This document shows positions 11,211-59,822 of a stretch of DNA of 64,000 bases, piece by piece. The stretch lies in sequence record ON190024.1; one strand, 5' to 3'. The notes below the pieces were generated by a model. The model was not told where the DNA came from, did no database searches, and saw nothing but the letters and a program-made list of their open reading frames with translations. The stretch's first letter is position 1. Each line of letters begins with the position of its first letter. The translations under genes were made by a program, and so were the position numbers.

Positions 11211-11218
11211 TAGATACG

Positions 11219-11246
11219 AAAAAGGGAGCAAATTGCTCCCTTTTTT
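11219..11246. terminator. Bidirectional terminator
   Basis: AAAAAGGGAGCA-AAT-TGCTCCCTTTTTT. Confidence 0.9.
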
Positions 11247-12551: not shown

Positions 12552-12580
12552 AGTATACATATCAAACGGGTTTTTGTAAA
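12552..12580 (-). promoter_or_regulatory. uvsY promoter
   Basis: (G)TTTACA-17-TATACT. Confidence 0.7.
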
Positions 12581-12584
12581 CACG

Positions 12585-12655
12585 AATCTTACTAATACTT
12601 CTAATATCACTAAAAGCACTAATTCTACTAAGATGATGCGGAATTTTTCCGCCTC
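12585..12655 (-). repeat. 71-bp iteron-like element, copy 1
   Basis: Reverse complement matches 55788..55858 at 68/71; hairpin plus five 9-bp TTAG units. Confidence 0.95.
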
Positions 12656-12675
12656 TTACCTTTTGCTTCGCGTAT

Positions 12676-12697
12676 AAAAAAAGCCCCGAAGGGCTTT
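12676..12697 (-). terminator. Terminator after genes 34-35
   Basis: AAAGCCC-TTCG-GGGCTTTTTTT. Confidence 0.85.
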
Positions 12698-12698
12698 C

Positions 12699-15383
12699 TT
12701 ATTGCATTGCGTAATCAATCGCAGTGATTGTGTCTTCATAGAAACAAGCAACTTTGACTTCAGACACGATAGGCAAAGCCCACATTGTCTGACTTTCAGT
12801 TACAGATCCCTCATCACGATAGCGCAAGAACATCTTGGCGTGGTCTGATTTCCATCTATAGAAGCTAACTGCGTTCGTTGTGTATGAGCCAACGCCTTTT
12901 GCTGTTAAGCTACTCGGATCATCTTCAGGGTTGTAAACGCCGAAGTAGTTTTCATACTTGTCTTGGAACGCTTGATGTTGAGCATCTGTCCACGTATGCG
13001 GTAGAATGAATGCTTGCATCAGAATCCATTTTCCGTTAGCGGCTGGGAAGTTATCAACACGATCAATCGTTGCAAATGTTGAAGCATCTGTCCCATCAGC
13101 TAATCTCAATGTGCTAAACGCATCAGCGCCATCTTTGACTCGACAACTAAAGTGTAAATAACCCGCGTCTTTATCAATTGAGTTTACCCACAATGACAAG
13201 AAGTATGGTCTTGTCGGGTCAATATTGATTTCAGACATTTCAATCATTGTTTGTGTGCCTGTAGAGCGTGTGAAACACTTCTCGCCATTCGAAAGAACAT
13301 AATTCCCCCAATGAACGTTATCTGTTTCTCTGACTGGCATATTGACATTCTCGTATAGATTCGAGTTCGAGTTGTATGCATTAAACCAGCTTGTGTCATT
13401 CACTACGTTGCCTGATATTGGTGAATTTACAATATCTTGAGCAGCTAGACCATTTATATTCGAAATCAAATGAGGAGTTCCGCTAGGAACTGCAAACCCG
13501 CCTTTGTAAACGAGTGCATAATCGAAGTACTCTTGGTCAAGATCTGACCACACGCCAAATGTAACTGCACCTGCTGGGACTTGAACAAAAAACTCTTGAG
13601 TTTCGAATAATTCCGCTGACCCGAAGAAAATATTCTGCCTTGCAACTTCAGTGTTCACTGCATTGTACATTCTCAGGTTACACGATTTCGTACCGCCACC
13701 GATAGCAGTAGTTCTATCAATACACGCTCTTACTTTGTAGATCAGGTATTGACCTTCAACAACACCGAAGTCAGATAGATTGTATCGAGTATCAACGGGT
13801 ACCATATCACGTGCCAGAAGCGCGTTTCCGAATCCTGCTGAACCGATTCCATCTTTGTCTTCGAATGCAGTATCAACAATGCTGTCGCCGTCAGACGGGT
13901 GGTCGAATATACATCGATCATATACAATACCTAAATCAGCACGACCGAACGCCGCATAACTGTAGCTGTATTGGCTGAAGTACGAACTTCCTCTATACTC
14001 GACGGGATTGTATTGATTAATTGCAGCATCAACCGCCGCATCGCCGTACATCGAACCGTTAGAGACGATGATGAAGATTTCATTCGTCAGGTTATTCAAT
14101 GCATTGACGAAGTTTCCGCGTTCAGTTGAACTACTCAAAAGATACTTGCTGCTTGTTTTCACTGTCAAATCATCATTCATAATCAGAAGACGAATTTGAT
14201 ATGCTTGTTTAGTTTCGGGCGTGAATAGACTAACATCATTCAAATAGCATGATGCTAGATTCGAACTACCGTTTGCAACACCAGTAGCAACTAGACGATA
14301 ATTGTTATTCGAGAACTCGCGAATGTGTCTAGCCGCAAGTTCATATTCACCTACTCGTGATCCTACAGGCGCATAGATCCACAATTCAGTTACATTGACT
14401 GTTTGTCCGGGACCTGGCGTAGAGCCGCCCGACGCAGCTTGCGCACCGATTGCATAATACCAGTTTGAGTGATTCACTGACCCATCAGCAAGTGAGTTTG
14501 AGCCTGTGTTGTACTCAATACCACCCCAATACTGAACGTCAGATTGGATTGAAATCGCTTCGTAGCCACGAACCCCACCAGTACGAGCATCATAATCCCC
14601 TGTGTAGTTTTTAATCAACGGAGCATCGGAAATCATGAAGTTAGTCAACCAACGTTTTCCAGTTGGTAGTTTAGCAACATCTGACGTATACCCACAATAC
14701 CAGTACATATTACTTGTTGACAGAGTACTAGGCGTCGTGAAACGAGCATAATGACGCTTCCATAGAATTCCATCAACTATGCGTTCATTGCCGGCTGACT
14801 CAAACACATCACCCGGGATGTGACCTAGTGTATATGGGTTTGATGCACCGTCATACCAGCGAGAATGAAACAGAGCTGCGGTATCATGATCAGTATCGAC
14901 TTCATATCCAACCCAACATGACATTGTGTATGTTCGATTCGGAAGAAGTCGGGTTTGTGGAACTGAAAACACAATTTGATCTTTGACCGCCGCAGTTGGC
15001 TGCTCGACAACGTATTTTGATGACCCTGGGTTTTCTTTTTCAACAACGACCCATGAGCCTGTTTTTGTCGTTTGTTCGGTAACAAATTGACCTCCAGCCA
15101 AGTTACCGTTTGTCAGATACTGACCTACGCCTTTCGCTGCGAAGTTGTTACTTTGTTTCCAAATATTCGTGATGCCGACTTCAGGGTAATGCAGCTTGAA
15201 TTGAAATTTACCGTCCTCACGACGAAATTCTTCAAGTGAGTTTAACGCACTGAATTTGGCTTCAATGTCGGGATCCGTCCCGACACTTCTAGCCTCAGCA
15301 TCGGAGGTGAAAAATACACCTCCTGTAGAATCATGGCGAAAGATTAGTAACCAATCGCCTTCACGTTTAAGTCTTTCGTACAT
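12699..15383 (-). CDS. 35: Long tail fibre hinge protein gp35-like, enlarged (894 aa)
   Basis: Directly after gene 34; fibrinogen-like N-terminus (WLLIFRH...FKLHYPE...WKQ) and ILEI-like central part. Confidence 0.65.
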   Translation of the reverse strand: MYERLKREGDWLLIFRHDSTGGVFFTSDAEARSVGTDPDIEAKFSALNSLEEFRREDGKFQFKLHYPEVGITNIWKQSNNFAAKGVGQYLTNGNLAGGQFVTEQTTKTGSWVVVEKENPGSSKYVVEQPTAAVKDQIVFSVPQTRLLPNRTYTMSCWVGYEVDTDHDTAALFHSRWYDGASNPYTLGHIPGDVFESAGNERIVDGILWKRHYARFTTPSTLSTSNMYWYCGYTSDVAKLPTGKRWLTNFMISDAPLIKNYTGDYDARTGGVRGYEAISIQSDVQYWGGIEYNTGSNSLADGSVNHSNWYYAIGAQAASGGSTPGPGQTVNVTELWIYAPVGSRVGEYELAARHIREFSNNNYRLVATGVANGSSNLASCYLNDVSLFTPETKQAYQIRLLIMNDDLTVKTSSKYLLSSSTERGNFVNALNNLTNEIFIIVSNGSMYGDAAVDAAINQYNPVEYRGSSYFSQYSYSYAAFGRADLGIVYDRCIFDHPSDGDSIVDTAFEDKDGIGSAGFGNALLARDMVPVDTRYNLSDFGVVEGQYLIYKVRACIDRTTAIGGGTKSCNLRMYNAVNTEVARQNIFFGSAELFETQEFFVQVPAGAVTFGVWSDLDQEYFDYALVYKGGFAVPSGTPHLISNINGLAAQDIVNSPISGNVVNDTSWFNAYNSNSNLYENVNMPVRETDNVHWGNYVLSNGEKCFTRSTGTQTMIEMSEINIDPTRPYFLSLWVNSIDKDAGYLHFSCRVKDGADAFSTLRLADGTDASTFATIDRVDNFPAANGKWILMQAFILPHTWTDAQHQAFQDKYENYFGVYNPEDDPSSLTAKGVGSYTTNAVSFYRWKSDHAKMFLRYRDEGSVTESQTMWALPIVSEVKVACFYEDTITAIDYAMQ

Positions 15384-39591: not shown

Positions 39592-40352
39592 TGCGTATTG
39601 TTGTCGGGTCAACTGCGTTGCATCATAATGGTATTCGACTGCGTAAGACCATTAAAGATCTAGATGTATTCGTAGACTCGCCCGACTCGGCTAACGACGG
39701 GGATGATTTTATTGTCATGCCCGTCGAGATATTGCAGATGTTCGATGGTGATATAGCAACTGCTGACGAAATCTACACGATTAAGTGCAGTCATCTTGGT
39801 TGGGATGAGCATAAAGTCGGATATAGTCAGTTTGGTGGTTCGACATTGTGGGACAAGCACAAGCGTGATGTTATTGCGCTATCACGATTCTGCAAAATCA
39901 AGCCTGAGCTATACGCAGCGTTGACGAATCATTGGCGAAAAGAGCTTGGCAATAAAGAGTATCTGTGCTTGAACAAAGACGCAGACGACTTCTTTAATGA
40001 CAAAGTGAGATACGTGTATGACCATGATGAACTACATCGAATGGTTGCAGCACCCAATCGCCCGTTGTATGAGAAAATTCTCAAAGACGACTGTGATGTT
40101 TTAGTCAGTAAAGAGAAGTTCGAACAATTGTCATTCGAAGACAAGATCAATTTGTTCCACGAGGAAATTTCGGTGATTGCTATTGAACGATATATTGTTC
40201 ACGGTATGATGCCGCTGAATGCGTGGAATCATGCGTTGAAGAAGACAATTACACGGCTGACCAAGAATTGGGCATGTGATTTCATTTGTGCAAACATGAG
40301 TCATTACATGAAGCCGAAATATAATTTGAATATTCTTGAAGAAAAGGGTTGA
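39591..40352 (+). CDS. Putative nucleotidyltransferase-fold protein
   Basis: VVGSTAL...KDLDVF (GS/DxD); YDHDELH. Confidence 0.6.
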   Translation: MRIVVGSTALHHNGIRLRKTIKDLDVFVDSPDSANDGDDFIVMPVEILQMFDGDIATADEIYTIKCSHLGWDEHKVGYSQFGGSTLWDKHKRDVIALSRFCKIKPELYAALTNHWRKELGNKEYLCLNKDADDFFNDKVRYVYDHDELHRMVAAPNRPLYEKILKDDCDVLVSKEKFEQLSFEDKINLFHEEISVIAIERYIVHGMMPLNAWNHALKKTITRLTKNWACDFICANMSHYMKPKYNLNILEEKG

Positions 40353-40378
40353 CTGCGGTCAGCCCTTTCGCGTATTAT
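40342..40378 (+). promoter_or_regulatory. Terminator-like hairpin containing an early promoter
   Basis: AAAAGGGTTGA-CTGCGG-TCAGCCCTTT; TTGACT-18-TATTAT. Confidence 0.75.
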
Positions 40379-40421
40379 AGCTTCATCAACACGACGTTGA
40401 CCAAAACAAAGAGAGAACATT

Positions 40422-51581: not shown

Positions 51582-52463
51582 ATGATTATATTCGAAGACA
51601 TCAATCCGCTTTGTGAAGCATTTGACCGCCCAGCACCTTATAAATGGGATTCTATGTACAACGAAGCTCGATTTACGGTTGGGAACGTTCAGTATGTCGC
51701 GTTTATCAAAGATAATGACACAGCAAGAGGTTTAAGTCTGTATGTGGCATTCCAGCGTCGTGATAACGCAACTGGTCAATGGACTCACTCACTTGCTAAA
51801 GGCTCGCCGAAAGACGCCATGACGGTATTGAGCACAATACTGGCAGCAACATTTGACAAGGCATCAAAAGTTGAACCGAATGAAATTACATTCAGTGCAT
51901 TTCGTGACGCAGATGACGAAGACGCAAATAAGCGTTTTAGGCTATACAAGCGTATGGCTGAGCGATACGCAAAGCAAATGAATTACACAGTTCATATCAC
52001 TGGTAATAGCTTCACACTAACAAACAACAATCCACCTAAGATCAGACGACTCCACAATGACGGCATTCACAAAGAAGATGGACTTACATACGTAATTTTC
52101 CCTGCTTGTAATGCCTTTACATGGGCGAAGATTTTCTGGCTTGACAATGACGGCGATTACATCAAACTTACATTACCGCACGGTCGTATTCACATTGTGA
52201 AAAAATCAAGTGACGTAATTGAAATCGAAGCAATTACACCGAAAGGTCGTTTTGACAATCTAGATTCAGATGAGATTTGGATGTCGATGTTATCTGATAT
52301 TAAAGTGAAAGCTAGAGGCGGAAGCACATTTACTATATCAGAGAAAGGCGCGATTTTAGATGCGGGTGATATGATTTTGTGCGAGCAAGGTACGTTTTAT
52401 TACCTAAGTTCTGAAGATGATTTCAAAGAAATCTGGGGATATGAAATCGTCTCGATTGAATAA
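51582..52463 (+). CDS. Late protein, candidate internal head protein
   Basis: NPLCEAFDRP; domain shared with the C-terminal half of 5776..6738. Confidence 0.65.
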   Translation: MIIFEDINPLCEAFDRPAPYKWDSMYNEARFTVGNVQYVAFIKDNDTARGLSLYVAFQRRDNATGQWTHSLAKGSPKDAMTVLSTILAATFDKASKVEPNEITFSAFRDADDEDANKRFRLYKRMAERYAKQMNYTVHITGNSFTLTNNNPPKIRRLHNDGIHKEDGLTYVIFPACNAFTWAKIFWLDNDGDYIKLTLPHGRIHIVKKSSDVIEIEAITPKGRFDNLDSDEIWMSMLSDIKVKARGGSTFTISEKGAILDAGDMILCEQGTFYYLSSEDDFKEIWGYEIVSIE

Positions 52464-52492
52464 AAAAAAGGGAGCAATTTGCTCCCTTTTTT
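52463..52492. terminator. Bidirectional terminator
   Basis: AAAAAAAGGGAGCA-ATT-TGCTCCCTTTTTT. Confidence 0.9.
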
Positions 52493-54931: not shown

Positions 54932-55750
54932 ATGACAATCACTAAAGCAGAAATGAAAGCAATCGCACTTGACCTAATGAGCGGTAACAATCTAATGCAA
55001 CGCGATTTGATTGCTGAAGGTTGGTCTTTCGAATTCTCAACTCGCAAAGCTGCACTTGGTGACTGTAACTACCGTACTAAAGTACTACGTCTTTCTGAAG
55101 TGTACTTGAATGCTCGTACTAAAGAAGAGCAAATCAACACAATCACTCACGAAATGGCTCACGCAATCGCGTACACTGATTTCAACGAACGTGGTCACGG
55201 TGCTATCTGGAAGCGTGTGCATCGTCAGCTAGGCGGTACTGCTGAACGTTGTTCAACTGTTTCAAACCCTGAAGCCGTAGACAGCAAGTACGTTGTTTTC
55301 TTCGAAAACGCTCAGGGTGAACTAGAAGTAGTTCAAAAAATGGATCGCATGACTAAGCGTTTTCAACCAGTACACATCAAGTCTCTATACTTGAAAGGTC
55401 GCAAAGCTGAAACTGAAGGTCAACTTCGTTGTGTTTCTTCAGCGACGTTCAAAGCTATCAAAGCTGATTTAGAAGCTAAGAAAGCTGATAACGCTGAAGC
55501 ATCAAAACCAGTTGCACCTAAAGCTGAAAAGAAAGCTGAAGCACCTAAGGCTGCTAAGAAAGTTTCAGCACGCGGTCAGGCTGCTCGTGACGCAATCGCA
55601 GAAATCGTGATGACTACTACTCATAAAGGTTGCAAGTCAGTGTCTTTCGAACAGCGTGGTAAATACAAAGACTGGTACATCATGATTGAACTAGAAGCTC
55701 ACACAATCGAACAGCGTCTAGATACTTTCAAAAAGAAACACAGTTTGTAA
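54932..55750 (+). CDS. SprT-like zinc metalloprotease
   Basis: LGDC, ITHEMAHA (HExxH), GHGAIWK. Confidence 0.85.
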   Translation: MTITKAEMKAIALDLMSGNNLMQRDLIAEGWSFEFSTRKAALGDCNYRTKVLRLSEVYLNARTKEEQINTITHEMAHAIAYTDFNERGHGAIWKRVHRQLGGTAERCSTVSNPEAVDSKYVVFFENAQGELEVVQKMDRMTKRFQPVHIKSLYLKGRKAETEGQLRCVSSATFKAIKADLEAKKADNAEASKPVAPKAEKKAEAPKAAKKVSARGQAARDAIAEIVMTTTHKGCKSVSFEQRGKYKDWYIMIELEAHTIEQRLDTFKKKHSL

Positions 55751-55759
55751 TCTCTCAAT

Positions 55760-55781
55760 TAGCCCCGAAAGGGGCTTTTTT
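55760..55781 (+). terminator. Terminator
   Basis: AGCCCC-GAAA-GGGGCTTTTTT. Confidence 0.85.
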
Positions 55782-55787
55782 AGGTTT

Positions 55788-55858
55788 GAGGCGGAAAAAT
55801 TCCGTCTCATCTTAGTAGAATTAGTACTTTTAGTGATATTAGAAGTATTAGTAAGATT
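55788..55858 (+). repeat. 71-bp iteron-like element, copy 2
   Basis: TTAGTAGAA TTAGTACTT TTAGTGATA TTAGAAGTA TTAGTAAGA at 55812-55856. Confidence 0.95.
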
Positions 55859-55860
55859 TG

Positions 55861-55889
55861 TTTAACAAACACCTTGACAGCCGTATAAT
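55861..55889 (+). promoter_or_regulatory. GTTTA-class promoter
   Basis: (G)TTTAAC-17-TATAAT. Confidence 0.7.
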
Positions 55890-55907: not shown

Positions 55908-56147
55908 ATGATAACGATATACACAATTCCTAACTGTGACGGGTGTCGTCACGCTATCGCCCTCTGTAAGTTCAAACACGTTCCGTATACTGTAATCGAG
56001 TTACAGTCGCAGACTGACATCGACCAATTACATCAAAAGCTTGGTGATAATCGCAATATTCGCGTTCCTCTGGCTATGCATGGTGACACATACATCGGTC
56101 ACCTGCCTGAATTGAAGAAATGGGTTGATGAGCAGACGTATAAATAA
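55908..56147 (+). CDS. Glutaredoxin
   Basis: CDGC, RVP, YIG motifs. Confidence 0.85.
   Translation: MITIYTIPNCDGCRHAIALCKFKHVPYTVIELQSQTDIDQLHQKLGDNRNIRVPLAMHGDTYIGHLPELKKWVDEQTYK
56139..56146 (+). promoter_or_regulatory. Late promoter
   Basis: Perfect TATAAATA. Confidence 0.75.
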
Positions 56148-59751: not shown

Positions 59752-59787
59752 AAAAGGGTTGCTTCGGCAACCCTTTTTGCGTATTAT
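59752..59787 (+). promoter_or_regulatory. Terminator hairpin containing an early promoter
   Basis: AAAAGGGTTGC-TTCG-GCAACCCTTTTT; TTGCTT-17-TATTAT. Confidence 0.8.
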
Positions 59788-59822
59788 AGCTACATCGAAA
59801 CGAGATACAAAGAGAGAACGTT

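Follow-up and report, generated by a model that had tools for sequence, protein, structure and literature searches.

Phage T4 starts replication at five or more dispersed origins. One lies at uvsY; another, oriE, has evenly spaced direct repeats of 12 nucleotides (nt) for which no link to oriE activity has been established (PMC3016281). Among T4-like phages the start of replication is understood for two T4 origins only, and no motif is common to the T4 origins or to the group as a whole. Arrays of a different kind occur in phage P2 and its satellite P4, which have six 9-bp Cox boxes each, and in mycobacteriophage L5, which has oriented stoperators. Finally, PeSL cassettes (Arbiol 2010; Comeau 2014) are dispersed between genes in T4-like genomes, including nt-1 and KVP40. 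Here we describe an element of ~72 nt, a hairpin followed by an array of phased TTAG units, that is present in two copies (A, 12585-12655, and B, 55788-55858) in a 64,000-nt stretch of sequence record ON190024.1, hereafter the window. The element resembles iteron or unwinding-element origins and the P2/P4 Cox-box arrays in its logic, and is unlike them in period and context. It belongs to a known kind, the dispersed cis-acting repeat array; its unusual and possibly important twist is mimicry by satellite-like Vibrio islands. Literature and transcriptome searches covering PVA8, PeSL and 2025 Schizotequatrovirus work (the KVP40 genome paper lay outside this scope) returned no description of it.

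The window is 100% identical to phage PVA8 (ON190024.1) and ~98% identical to KVP40, and its sequence places its source among the KVP40-like T4-type vibriophages of the genus Schizotequatrovirus. The original prediction had reported copies A and B as 68/71 identical in inverted orientation, and a direct count gave the same figure. In a repeat search they form the one long inverted pair of the window, with arms of 80 nt (12582-12661 and 55782-55861) that are 93% complementary, or 74/80 identical by direct count; just outside the arms identity drops to chance (10/30 and 6/30 in the 30-nt flanks). The layout that had been proposed (terminator, hairpin, five phased TTAG units, promoter) was found in both. 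What did not survive was the idea of a duplicated pair: a blastn search of the whole genome and its relatives with the 88-nt element found ~6 places per genome in all 51 related Vibrio phage records, distant ones included, and the two window copies are members of this six-copy family. In the distant D480 group megablast detects the 71-nt element only, leaving the flanking genes undetected. All six KVP40 copies lie upstream of the genes named for their loci, and each copy has the orientation of its flanking genes and of local transcription. Phage 1.081.O has the same six loci, with nrdH-locus genes only ~75% identical to those of the window. A run of three phased TTAG units is found 22 times in KVP40 against 0.06 expected, and the six elements account for every occurrence; the hairpin sequence is likewise confined to the elements, and no isolated shorter sites of one to three units lie elsewhere. 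As judged from these genomes, the family is a conserved, strand-oriented cis-acting element of ~72 nt that, among phages, is specific to KVP40-like (Schizotequatrovirus) Vibrio phages. Two local oddities were seen in 1.081.O: gene 1 is preceded by two tandem copies of the entire element, 5' module included (207112-207398; L388:7112-7398), and the copy at the 0136 locus has one TTAA unit.

The consensus was drawn from 25 distinct copies comprising 147 units. Its core consists of the hairpin, (A/C)TCATC, and five to seven units of the form TTAG-D-R-N-W-W. The stem-loop has a 9-bp stem and an AAA loop, GAGGCGGAA-AAA-TTCCG(C/T)(A/C)TC, and an ATC linker comes next; in copy A this linker and the 3' arm of the stem make up the near-invariant (A/C)TCATC. 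Standard pairs are formed by 88.9% of stem cells in the family alignment, versus 36-53% with slid partners. The commonest stem variant, also seen in copy B together with a GAG/CTC stem extension, sets a G.T(U) pair beside a newly gained G-C pair, and in three copies two adjacent pairs are swapped from GG/CC to CC/GG, probably in a single event. Arrays have five units in 6 copies, six in 16 and seven in 3, and the unit is exactly 9 nt long (period 9.0 bp) without exception in 147 units. TTAG is invariant in 147/147, T, A or G follows at position 5, a purine occupies position 6 in 145/147, and positions 8-9 are A or T. Units 1-3 keep identities of their own in all copies and genomes (TTAGTAGWA, TTAGTRNTT, TTAGTG...) and later units are looser. 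At the variable positions A accounts for 44%, T for 33%, G for 21% and C for 2.6%, as against 20.5% C genome-wide; this shortage of C on one strand is a strong strand asymmetry. A looser 5' module containing (A)GCGAAGCG stands ahead of most copies, both in phages and in the islands described below. RNAalifold predicted no structure in the array, and the best scores of the locus in a search of Rfam 15 were 16-19 bits against gathering thresholds of 50-55.

The element does not code for protein: frame 2 stops every 9 nt, the frame-1 TTA is unvaried in 147 units, and the copies share no conserved start codon. The proposed non-coding, cis-acting nature of the repeat was thereby upheld. The D480 (L141:215-376) and F86 (L143:173-376) records do have open reading frames (ORFs) labelled "hypothetical protein" over the element; these use different frames, run through the terminator, and are almost certainly spurious gene calls. 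Two short-motif readings were also rejected: the palindrome matches a DnaA box at 7/9 positions at best, and a MotA box read from GTGCTT in unit 2 is replaced in other copies by GTAGTT, GTACTT or GTGATT.

Terminator and promoter are flanking context and lie outside the conserved core, because the 0252-type and island copies are without either. The 0252 copies of KVP40, VH7D and 1.081.O have neither; there 9 nt separate the hairpin from the stop codon ahead of it, and at its other end the array passes, in its last unit, into the Shine-Dalgarno sequence and start codon. The wac copy of 1.081.O has a late promoter only, TATAAATA, downstream. In KVP40 the element sits between a terminator and a sigma-70-like promoter at four of six loci. 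Where an early-type promoter is present, the first unit is 49, 51, 62, 73 or 76 nt from the -35 hexamer, and this variation led us to reject a fixed activator or UP-element geometry. Nor is the element a PeSL cassette, since its conserved unit is hairpin plus TTAG array rather than terminator plus sigma-70 promoter (PMC4122927). The cassettes are similar in being dispersed, in that a terminator and a sigma-70 promoter flank most element copies, and in that copies recombine with each other; they differ in that the hairpin and TTAG array fall outside the published PeSL consensus and in that the element loci are fixed core-genome positions, not hyperplastic regions. An antisense small-RNA model (antisense promoter, CUAA array, bidirectional terminator) was dropped, with a usable reverse terminator at the uvsY copy only and two loci without any. 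A lambda-type nut site was dismissed as well: the hairpin loop is A-rich, but there is no boxA, and most copies follow a terminator, not a promoter.

Across phages the core is 80-97% identical and is better conserved than the flanking genes (~75% nucleotide identity). At uvsY the PVA8 array matches the nrdH arrays of PVA8 and KVP40 at 44/45 positions but the KVP40 uvsY array at only 38/45, and the 1.081.O copies match at 40-45/45 among themselves versus 33-37/45 to their positional counterparts in KVP40. Since likeness within a genome exceeds likeness by locus, gene conversion evidently makes the copies of a genome more alike. The two window copies owe their near-identity to a recent conversion of this sort, not to any special relationship between these two loci. 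Neighbouring loci among the six of KVP40 are separated by 26-54 kb. With six points placed at random on a circle, a minimum gap of at least 26 kb has P=0.006 and a coefficient of variation of the gaps of at most 0.257 has P=0.003, which suggests spacing more even than random; this is suggestive only, because the tests were chosen post hoc and the loci are syntenic between phages. When duplex stability was calculated from nearest-neighbour energies over 54-bp windows of the 245-kb KVP40 genome, all six arrays fell within the least stable 0.3%, with ranks that included 5, 6, 8, 12 and 17.

A metagenome scan with an invariant 19-mer gave three true matches: one is a phage wac-type locus and the other two (L184, L208) are non-phage contigs with ParA, a Thoeris ThsA/ThsB pair and a BsuBI/PstI-type restriction-modification system. 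All that these contigs have in common with KVP40 is the 71-74-nt hairpin and array, 97% identical to the 0252 copy. The order in L208 is the element, a second AGCGAAGCGA module, ~8 iterons (T)ATACAACTACG and then an ORF of 344-382 aa, which we call rep-like. This ORF has 83 homologue clusters, all labelled hypothetical and many of them on chromosome-sized contigs; the named homologues are nearly all from Vibrio (alginolyticus, parahaemolyticus, cholerae, vulnificus, fluvialis, cyclitrophicus and others). Searches of Pfam, PHROG and NCBIfam gave no match for the rep-like protein, and PLSDB plasmids gave none for either that protein or the element. On the chromosome the island measures ~14 kb and interrupts a peptidase M32 gene; one end encodes a large serine recombinase, and other features are an HTH repressor-like gene and a 1.4-kb non-coding region upstream of the rep-like gene. 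Hairpin and array lie in this region in L389-L392, L393/L394, L395 and L397, on the same strand as the rep-like gene and with the array ~500 nt from 5-8 iterons. A slot beside the rep-like gene holds a homologue of the sliding clamp gp45 (44% to KVP40 gp45, full length, E 8e-65), a clamp-loader-like AAA protein (28% to KVP40 gp44, E 2e-20) or a VapE-like protein. One island protein, of 77 aa, shows weak similarity to the N-terminus of KVP40.0297. The rep-like protein has iterons of its own, different from the array, and no homologue in the phage.

The island arrays track the phages of their surroundings. Those of the Harveyi clade match the KVP40/VH7D type (the L389 array agrees with the KVP40 0252 copy throughout units 1-4 and over most of unit 5), and that of a V. 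cyclitrophicus island has the TTAGAGATA TTAGAGATA form, as in the F86 and D480 phages; by this comparison island arrays follow those of local phages. The left arm of the hairpin is often degenerate in islands, with CCGCATCATC and the array kept, and 3' of the array we found no conserved ORF or promoter. The islands look like an undescribed satellite or hitcher family of KVP40-like phages. Their nearest parallel is PLE of Vibrio cholerae, the parasite of phage ICP1: the islands, too, have a large serine recombinase, a long non-coding region, iterons beside a rep-like gene and defence cargo. Unlike PLE, they have different proteins, with a rep-like protein that matches no known family, their presumed helper is T4-like, and they bear T4-type clamp or clamp-loader homologues and a phage cis element. 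The family comprises L389 (CP150876.1, ~1.90-1.92 Mb), L390-L397, L184 and L208, with a rep-like gene of 349 aa, and its variable slot may also hold ParA, or Thoeris with a restriction-modification system.

Altogether, the element is a strongly constrained cis-acting signal read by a trans-acting factor important to both phage and islands. We tentatively favour, at rather less than an even chance, a replication signal at the DNA level: an origin or replisome entry site that satellite-like islands would have hijacked. We rank this role first because of the even spacing, the unstable duplex and the strand-specific motif beside a conserved anchor; because T4 offers a precedent of dispersed origins, including uvsY, and of direct repeats at oriE; and because the captured copy sits in the replication control region of islands with clamp or clamp-loader genes. 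The even spacing, the duplex instability and the capture with clamp and clamp-loader homologues lend the origin idea indirect support. In such a scheme the hairpin and its CCGYMTCATC box would anchor a putative phage factor, and the C-free array, rich in TA steps, would serve as the unwinding region, perhaps bound on one strand in 9-nt steps. Islands would place the module beside their own iterons and rep-like gene so as to be amplified by the replisome of the infecting phage, which they may tap with their own clamp and clamp-loader homologues. Kreuzer and Alberts reportedly found that plasmids with T4 origins were replicated and packaged upon T4 infection, and this is just what a satellite of a headful-packaging T4-like phage would require. 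A fuller version, in which KVP40-like phages, in contrast to T4, have one sequence-defined origin module that occurs six times per genome, is read in strand-specific 9-nt steps by a putative phage initiator and is copied by a widespread family of clamp/loader-bearing Vibrio islands acting as satellites, seems to us doubtful as a whole; such satellites would keep the copied module matched to the local phage lineage, and would gain amplification and spread by the phage.

The likeness to T4 origins is partial. Both genomes have several dispersed sites, six here and no fewer than five in T4, and in each of them one site is at uvsY, beside genes 34 and 35. Further likenesses are an AT-rich, easily melted segment and evenly spaced direct repeats as in oriE, and several element copies lie at the edges of late-gene clusters. 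T4 origins, by contrast, have no common motif and the six sites here are one family, and the oriE repeat measures 12 nt versus 9 nt here. The original prediction had also appealed to protein-binding iterons at oriE, which overstates the case: those repeats have not been linked to oriE activity, and their function is itself unproven (PMC3016281). It further invoked a promoter-dependent R-loop origin of the ori(uvsY) type. This does not fit, because the promoter lies outside the module and the array lies upstream of that promoter. At oriF and oriG of T4, ~100 bp is enough for autonomous replication in infected cells, with a persistent R-loop. Unlike T4 oriF and oriG, which have a MotA-dependent middle promoter (TGCTT near -30) and an unwinding element downstream of it, the element is flanked by promoters with sigma-70-like -35 hexamers (TTTACA, TTAACA, TTGACA) or, in some copies, by none, and its array is upstream wherever a promoter exists. 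Origins of the iteron type have at least three regular direct repeats and an easily unwound AT-rich segment, and the element shows both, with five to seven units in all 25 copies and all six KVP40 arrays in the least stable 0.3%; the phase that would put repeats on one face (~11 or 22 bp) is absent, the period being 9.0 bp. Plasmid iterons are also longer, 17-22 bp. Both iteron plasmid origins and the basal unwinding system (DnaA box plus DnaA-trios) have, like the element, an anchor beside an easily melted, strand-specific repeat. As in DnaA-trios, the TAG triplets of the element share one phase, because its period equals three times 3 nt; unlike them, the repeat recurs every 9 nt instead of every 3, and no DnaA box is present.

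Several observations weigh against a role in replication. The array is upstream of a promoter or has none, and the well-studied T4 origins need the reverse order; T4 origins have no sequence motif in common; and iterons that are bound as duplex do not usually have a period of 9.0 bp. We identified no initiator gene for the array. GC and AT skew gave no signal around the arrays, and are uninformative because they track transcription direction only. The spacing test was picked with the positions already known, and syntenic loci make the genomes non-independent trials. The compensated GG/CC to CC/GG stem swap, the G.U that is the commonest pair at one position, and the transcription of some copies as intercistronic or 5'-UTR (untranslated region) sequence would fit an RNA role equally well. 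Islands might also copy the element only as a homology handle.

As to the original choice between origins and an operator array, both remain the leading readings; only "paired origins" was wrong, with six loci per genome. An operator or roadblock array on duplex DNA, on whose 5-7 repeats a phage protein would polymerise to control a promoter or block read-through, is a serious though unlikely alternative. Islands would then carry the array to sense or exploit the regulator, much as satellite P4 relates to the Cox boxes of phage P2, and the binder could be of Cox/Xis/Apl or ribbon-helix-helix type. The order of terminator, element and sigma-70-like promoter at four of six KVP40 loci, the shared orientation of each copy and its downstream gene, and a module common to phage and island all speak for it, as does concerted evolution within genomes, which is expected of sites that track one protein. 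Fixed short periods have parallels too: omega and ParG arrays have a 4-7-bp core repeated every 7-8 bp. The likeness to the P2/P4 Cox boxes and to the Apl sites of phage 186 is close in that ~6 direct, oriented 9-bp repeats occur on both helper and satellite, as the 5-7 units do on phages and islands. Cox boxes, however, recur at ~10.5 bp and occupy one helix face, whereas a period of exactly 9.0 bp puts successive sites on different faces. P2 is moreover temperate, with Cox acting in the lysis-lysogeny switch and excision, and KVP40-like phages are virulent; no Cox-like protein was identified here, and no search was aimed at one. An operator is also hard to square with a distance to the -35 hexamer that varies from 49 to 76 nt out of helical phase, with the several promoterless copies and the late-only 1.081.O wac copy, and with a genome that has no sites of one to three units elsewhere. 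Regulation does not predict even genome-wide spacing.

Less probable still is an RNA element in read-through or polycistronic transcripts, in which the stem-loop would, as with TRAP, HutP or the gp32 operator, nucleate an oligomeric RNA-binding protein on the C-free (UUAGDR-N3) array, or the units would be clustered RNase E sites, so as to control processing or translation of the next gene. All copies run in the direction of transcription, those of the 0252 type lie between cistrons with no terminator or promoter and have their last unit as the Shine-Dalgarno sequence just before the ATG, and the stem has kept its pairing through a double compensated change, with G.U commonest at one position. 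Depletion of C with retention of G implies that the array stays single-stranded, in keeping with the RNAalifold result. Yet four of the six phage copies lie just past strong terminators and ahead of the next promoter, so little RNA would contain them. Further, the island hairpin is often degenerate beside a perfectly kept array with no conserved ORF after it, Rfam has no match, and such a role would leave the even spacing and the location in a replicon control region unexplained.

We consider it improbable that the element is a recombination handle or selfish cassette, that is, a functionless dispersed repeat spread by T4-type recombination, which islands would use as homology for recombination-dependent replication or for co-integration with the phage. 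T4 does replicate plasmids that have homology to it. Loci have clearly exchanged sequence by gene conversion (at uvsY, PVA8 has an array of nrdH type, and the 1.081.O copies cluster by genome), one 1.081.O locus has a tandem duplicate, and a spread of this kind has been proposed for PeSL cassettes, which are documented in nt-1 and KVP40 (PMC4122927). Neutral repeats, however, would decay and shift position, whereas here the same six loci are kept although their genes have diverged to ~75% nucleotide identity, the core is 80-97% identical with position-specific units, TTAG is present in 147/147 units and the position-6 purine in 145/147.

Most remote of all is some other DNA signal, for instance one that starts packaging, marks or protects the phage's own DNA, or is a preferred target of the phage 7-deazaguanine transglycosylase DpdA2: satellites commonly copy the packaging sites of their helpers and the G of TTAG is invariant in every unit, but T4-type packaging is sequence-independent, copies point both ways on the genome, DpdA2 has no known modification motif, and six arrays would offer ~36 invariant G against ~170 modified bases. 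The latter figure comes from nt-1, whose DNA has ~350 deazaguanines per million nucleotides, or ~170 per genome, so few that rare, specific target sites are implied (PMC6884629). A DpdA2-type 7-deazaguanine pathway is encoded by nt-1 and KVP40, and KVP40 has a queuosine-like cluster at ~70-75 kb and 133-137 kb.

Whichever role is right, a 72-nt module at six conserved, evenly spaced loci is a directly testable origin candidate, or a defined bait site for a new phage factor, and its relevance extends to an entire genus of large vibriophages with broad host range, which find use in aquaculture phage therapy. That islands with clamp or clamp-loader genes and defence cargo also have the module suggests that virulent T4-like phages are the target of a satellite or hitcher family so far unrecognised; if real, this family would influence both how well phages work and how defence systems spread. 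Should the element turn out to be an operator or RNA site, host islands would still clearly be mimicking a cis element of a virulent phage. Positions of the elements and of their surroundings are collected in Table 1.

Table 1. Element copies and adjoining features in the window and in KVP40. For KVP40 the position is that of the first TTAG unit.
Sequence	Feature	Position	Strand	Basis or remark
Window	Copy A stem-loop, GAGGCGGAA-AAA-TTCCGCATC	12635-12655	-	sequence; core 6-bp stem 12638-12652
Window	Copy A ATC linker, stem to array	12632-12634	-	sequence
Window	Copy A array, five phased 9-nt units: TTAGTAGAA TTAGTGCTT TTAGTGATA TTAGAAGTA TTAGTAAGA	12587-12631	-	sequence
Window	Copy A degenerate sixth unit, TTCGTGTTT	12586-12578	-	
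Window	Copy A upstream GCGAAGC motif	12665-12671	-	within looser 5' module (A)GCGAAGCG
Window	Copy A terminator-shaped hairpin and T run, end of gene 35	12676-12697	-	sequence reading; not flagged by terminator scan
Window	Copy A uvsY promoter, sigma-70-like TTTACA-17-TATACT	12552-12580	-	
Window	uvsY ATG	12531	-	
Window	Gene 35	12699-15383		copy A between gene 35 and uvsY
Window	Copy B stem-loop, GAGGCGGAA-AAA-TTCCGTCTC	55788-55808	+	
Window	Copy B ATC linker	55809-55811	+	
Window	Copy B array: TTAGTAGAA TTAGTACTT TTAGTGATA TTAGAAGTA TTAGTAAGA	55812-55856	+	
Window	Copy B degenerate sixth unit, TTTGTTTAA	55857-55865	+	
Window	Copy B intrinsic terminator after SprT-like gene	55761-55782	+	hairpin 55761-55776 and T run
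Window	Copy B nrdH promoter, sigma-70-like TTAACA-16-TATAAT	55862-55889	+	alternative TTTAAC-17-TATAAT
Window	SprT-like gene	54932-55750	+	copy B between SprT-like gene and nrdH
Window	nrdH	55908-56147	+	ATG at 55908
KVP40	nrdH locus	35912	+	
KVP40	ORF 0136 / methylase 0137 locus	79236	+	
KVP40	Lipoprotein 0252 locus	129683	+	
KVP40	Gene 1 locus	184013	-	
KVP40	wac locus	210026	+	
KVP40	uvsY locus	238264	-	

One of the KVP40 copies has an intact ORF directly 3' of it, ORF 0136 (178 aa; KVP40 79366-79902, L002:29366-29902), which is absent from the KVP40 RefSeq annotation and has an annotated counterpart, NVP1081O_148, in 1.081.O. The window also contains further short dispersed repeats (40343-40394, 59752-59803, 440-473, 11214-11246 and 52460-52492). 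In these five a terminator hairpin is joined to a TATTAT-type -10 box, which makes them PeSL-like terminator/early-promoter cassettes such as have been published for nt-1 and KVP40.

Look-alikes turned up in wider scans. Viral contigs searched with a loose pattern of five phased TTAG were swamped by unrelated tandem repeats, and tighter scans returned KVP40, VH7D, two chance matches in coding sequence and one look-alike array in an AT-rich contig. This last array (L128:12150-12200, minus strand, identical to L154), on an unrelated AT-rich viral contig of 49 kb, is irregular, reading TCATC TTAGTAGAA TTAGTAATA TTAGTTA TTAGTAGTA TTAGTTAAC; it comes directly after the gene for an HTH_36 protein, with a TnpB-like gene (called by eye) nearby. 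In the genome scan, almost all of the matches listed were a 21-nt Flavobacteriaceae look-alike without hairpin or array. This 21-mer, ATCATCTTAGTAGTATTAGTG, was found at L264:6468-6486 and at more than 100 other Flavobacteriaceae loci (L264-L383) among the matches listed. In many Flavobacteriaceae genera it is placed directly 3' of a conserved gene for a membrane protein, a neighbour of rho, and precedes a terminator; its resemblance to the element is probably chance amplified by shared ancestry, yet it is a conserved 3'-UTR motif in its own right.

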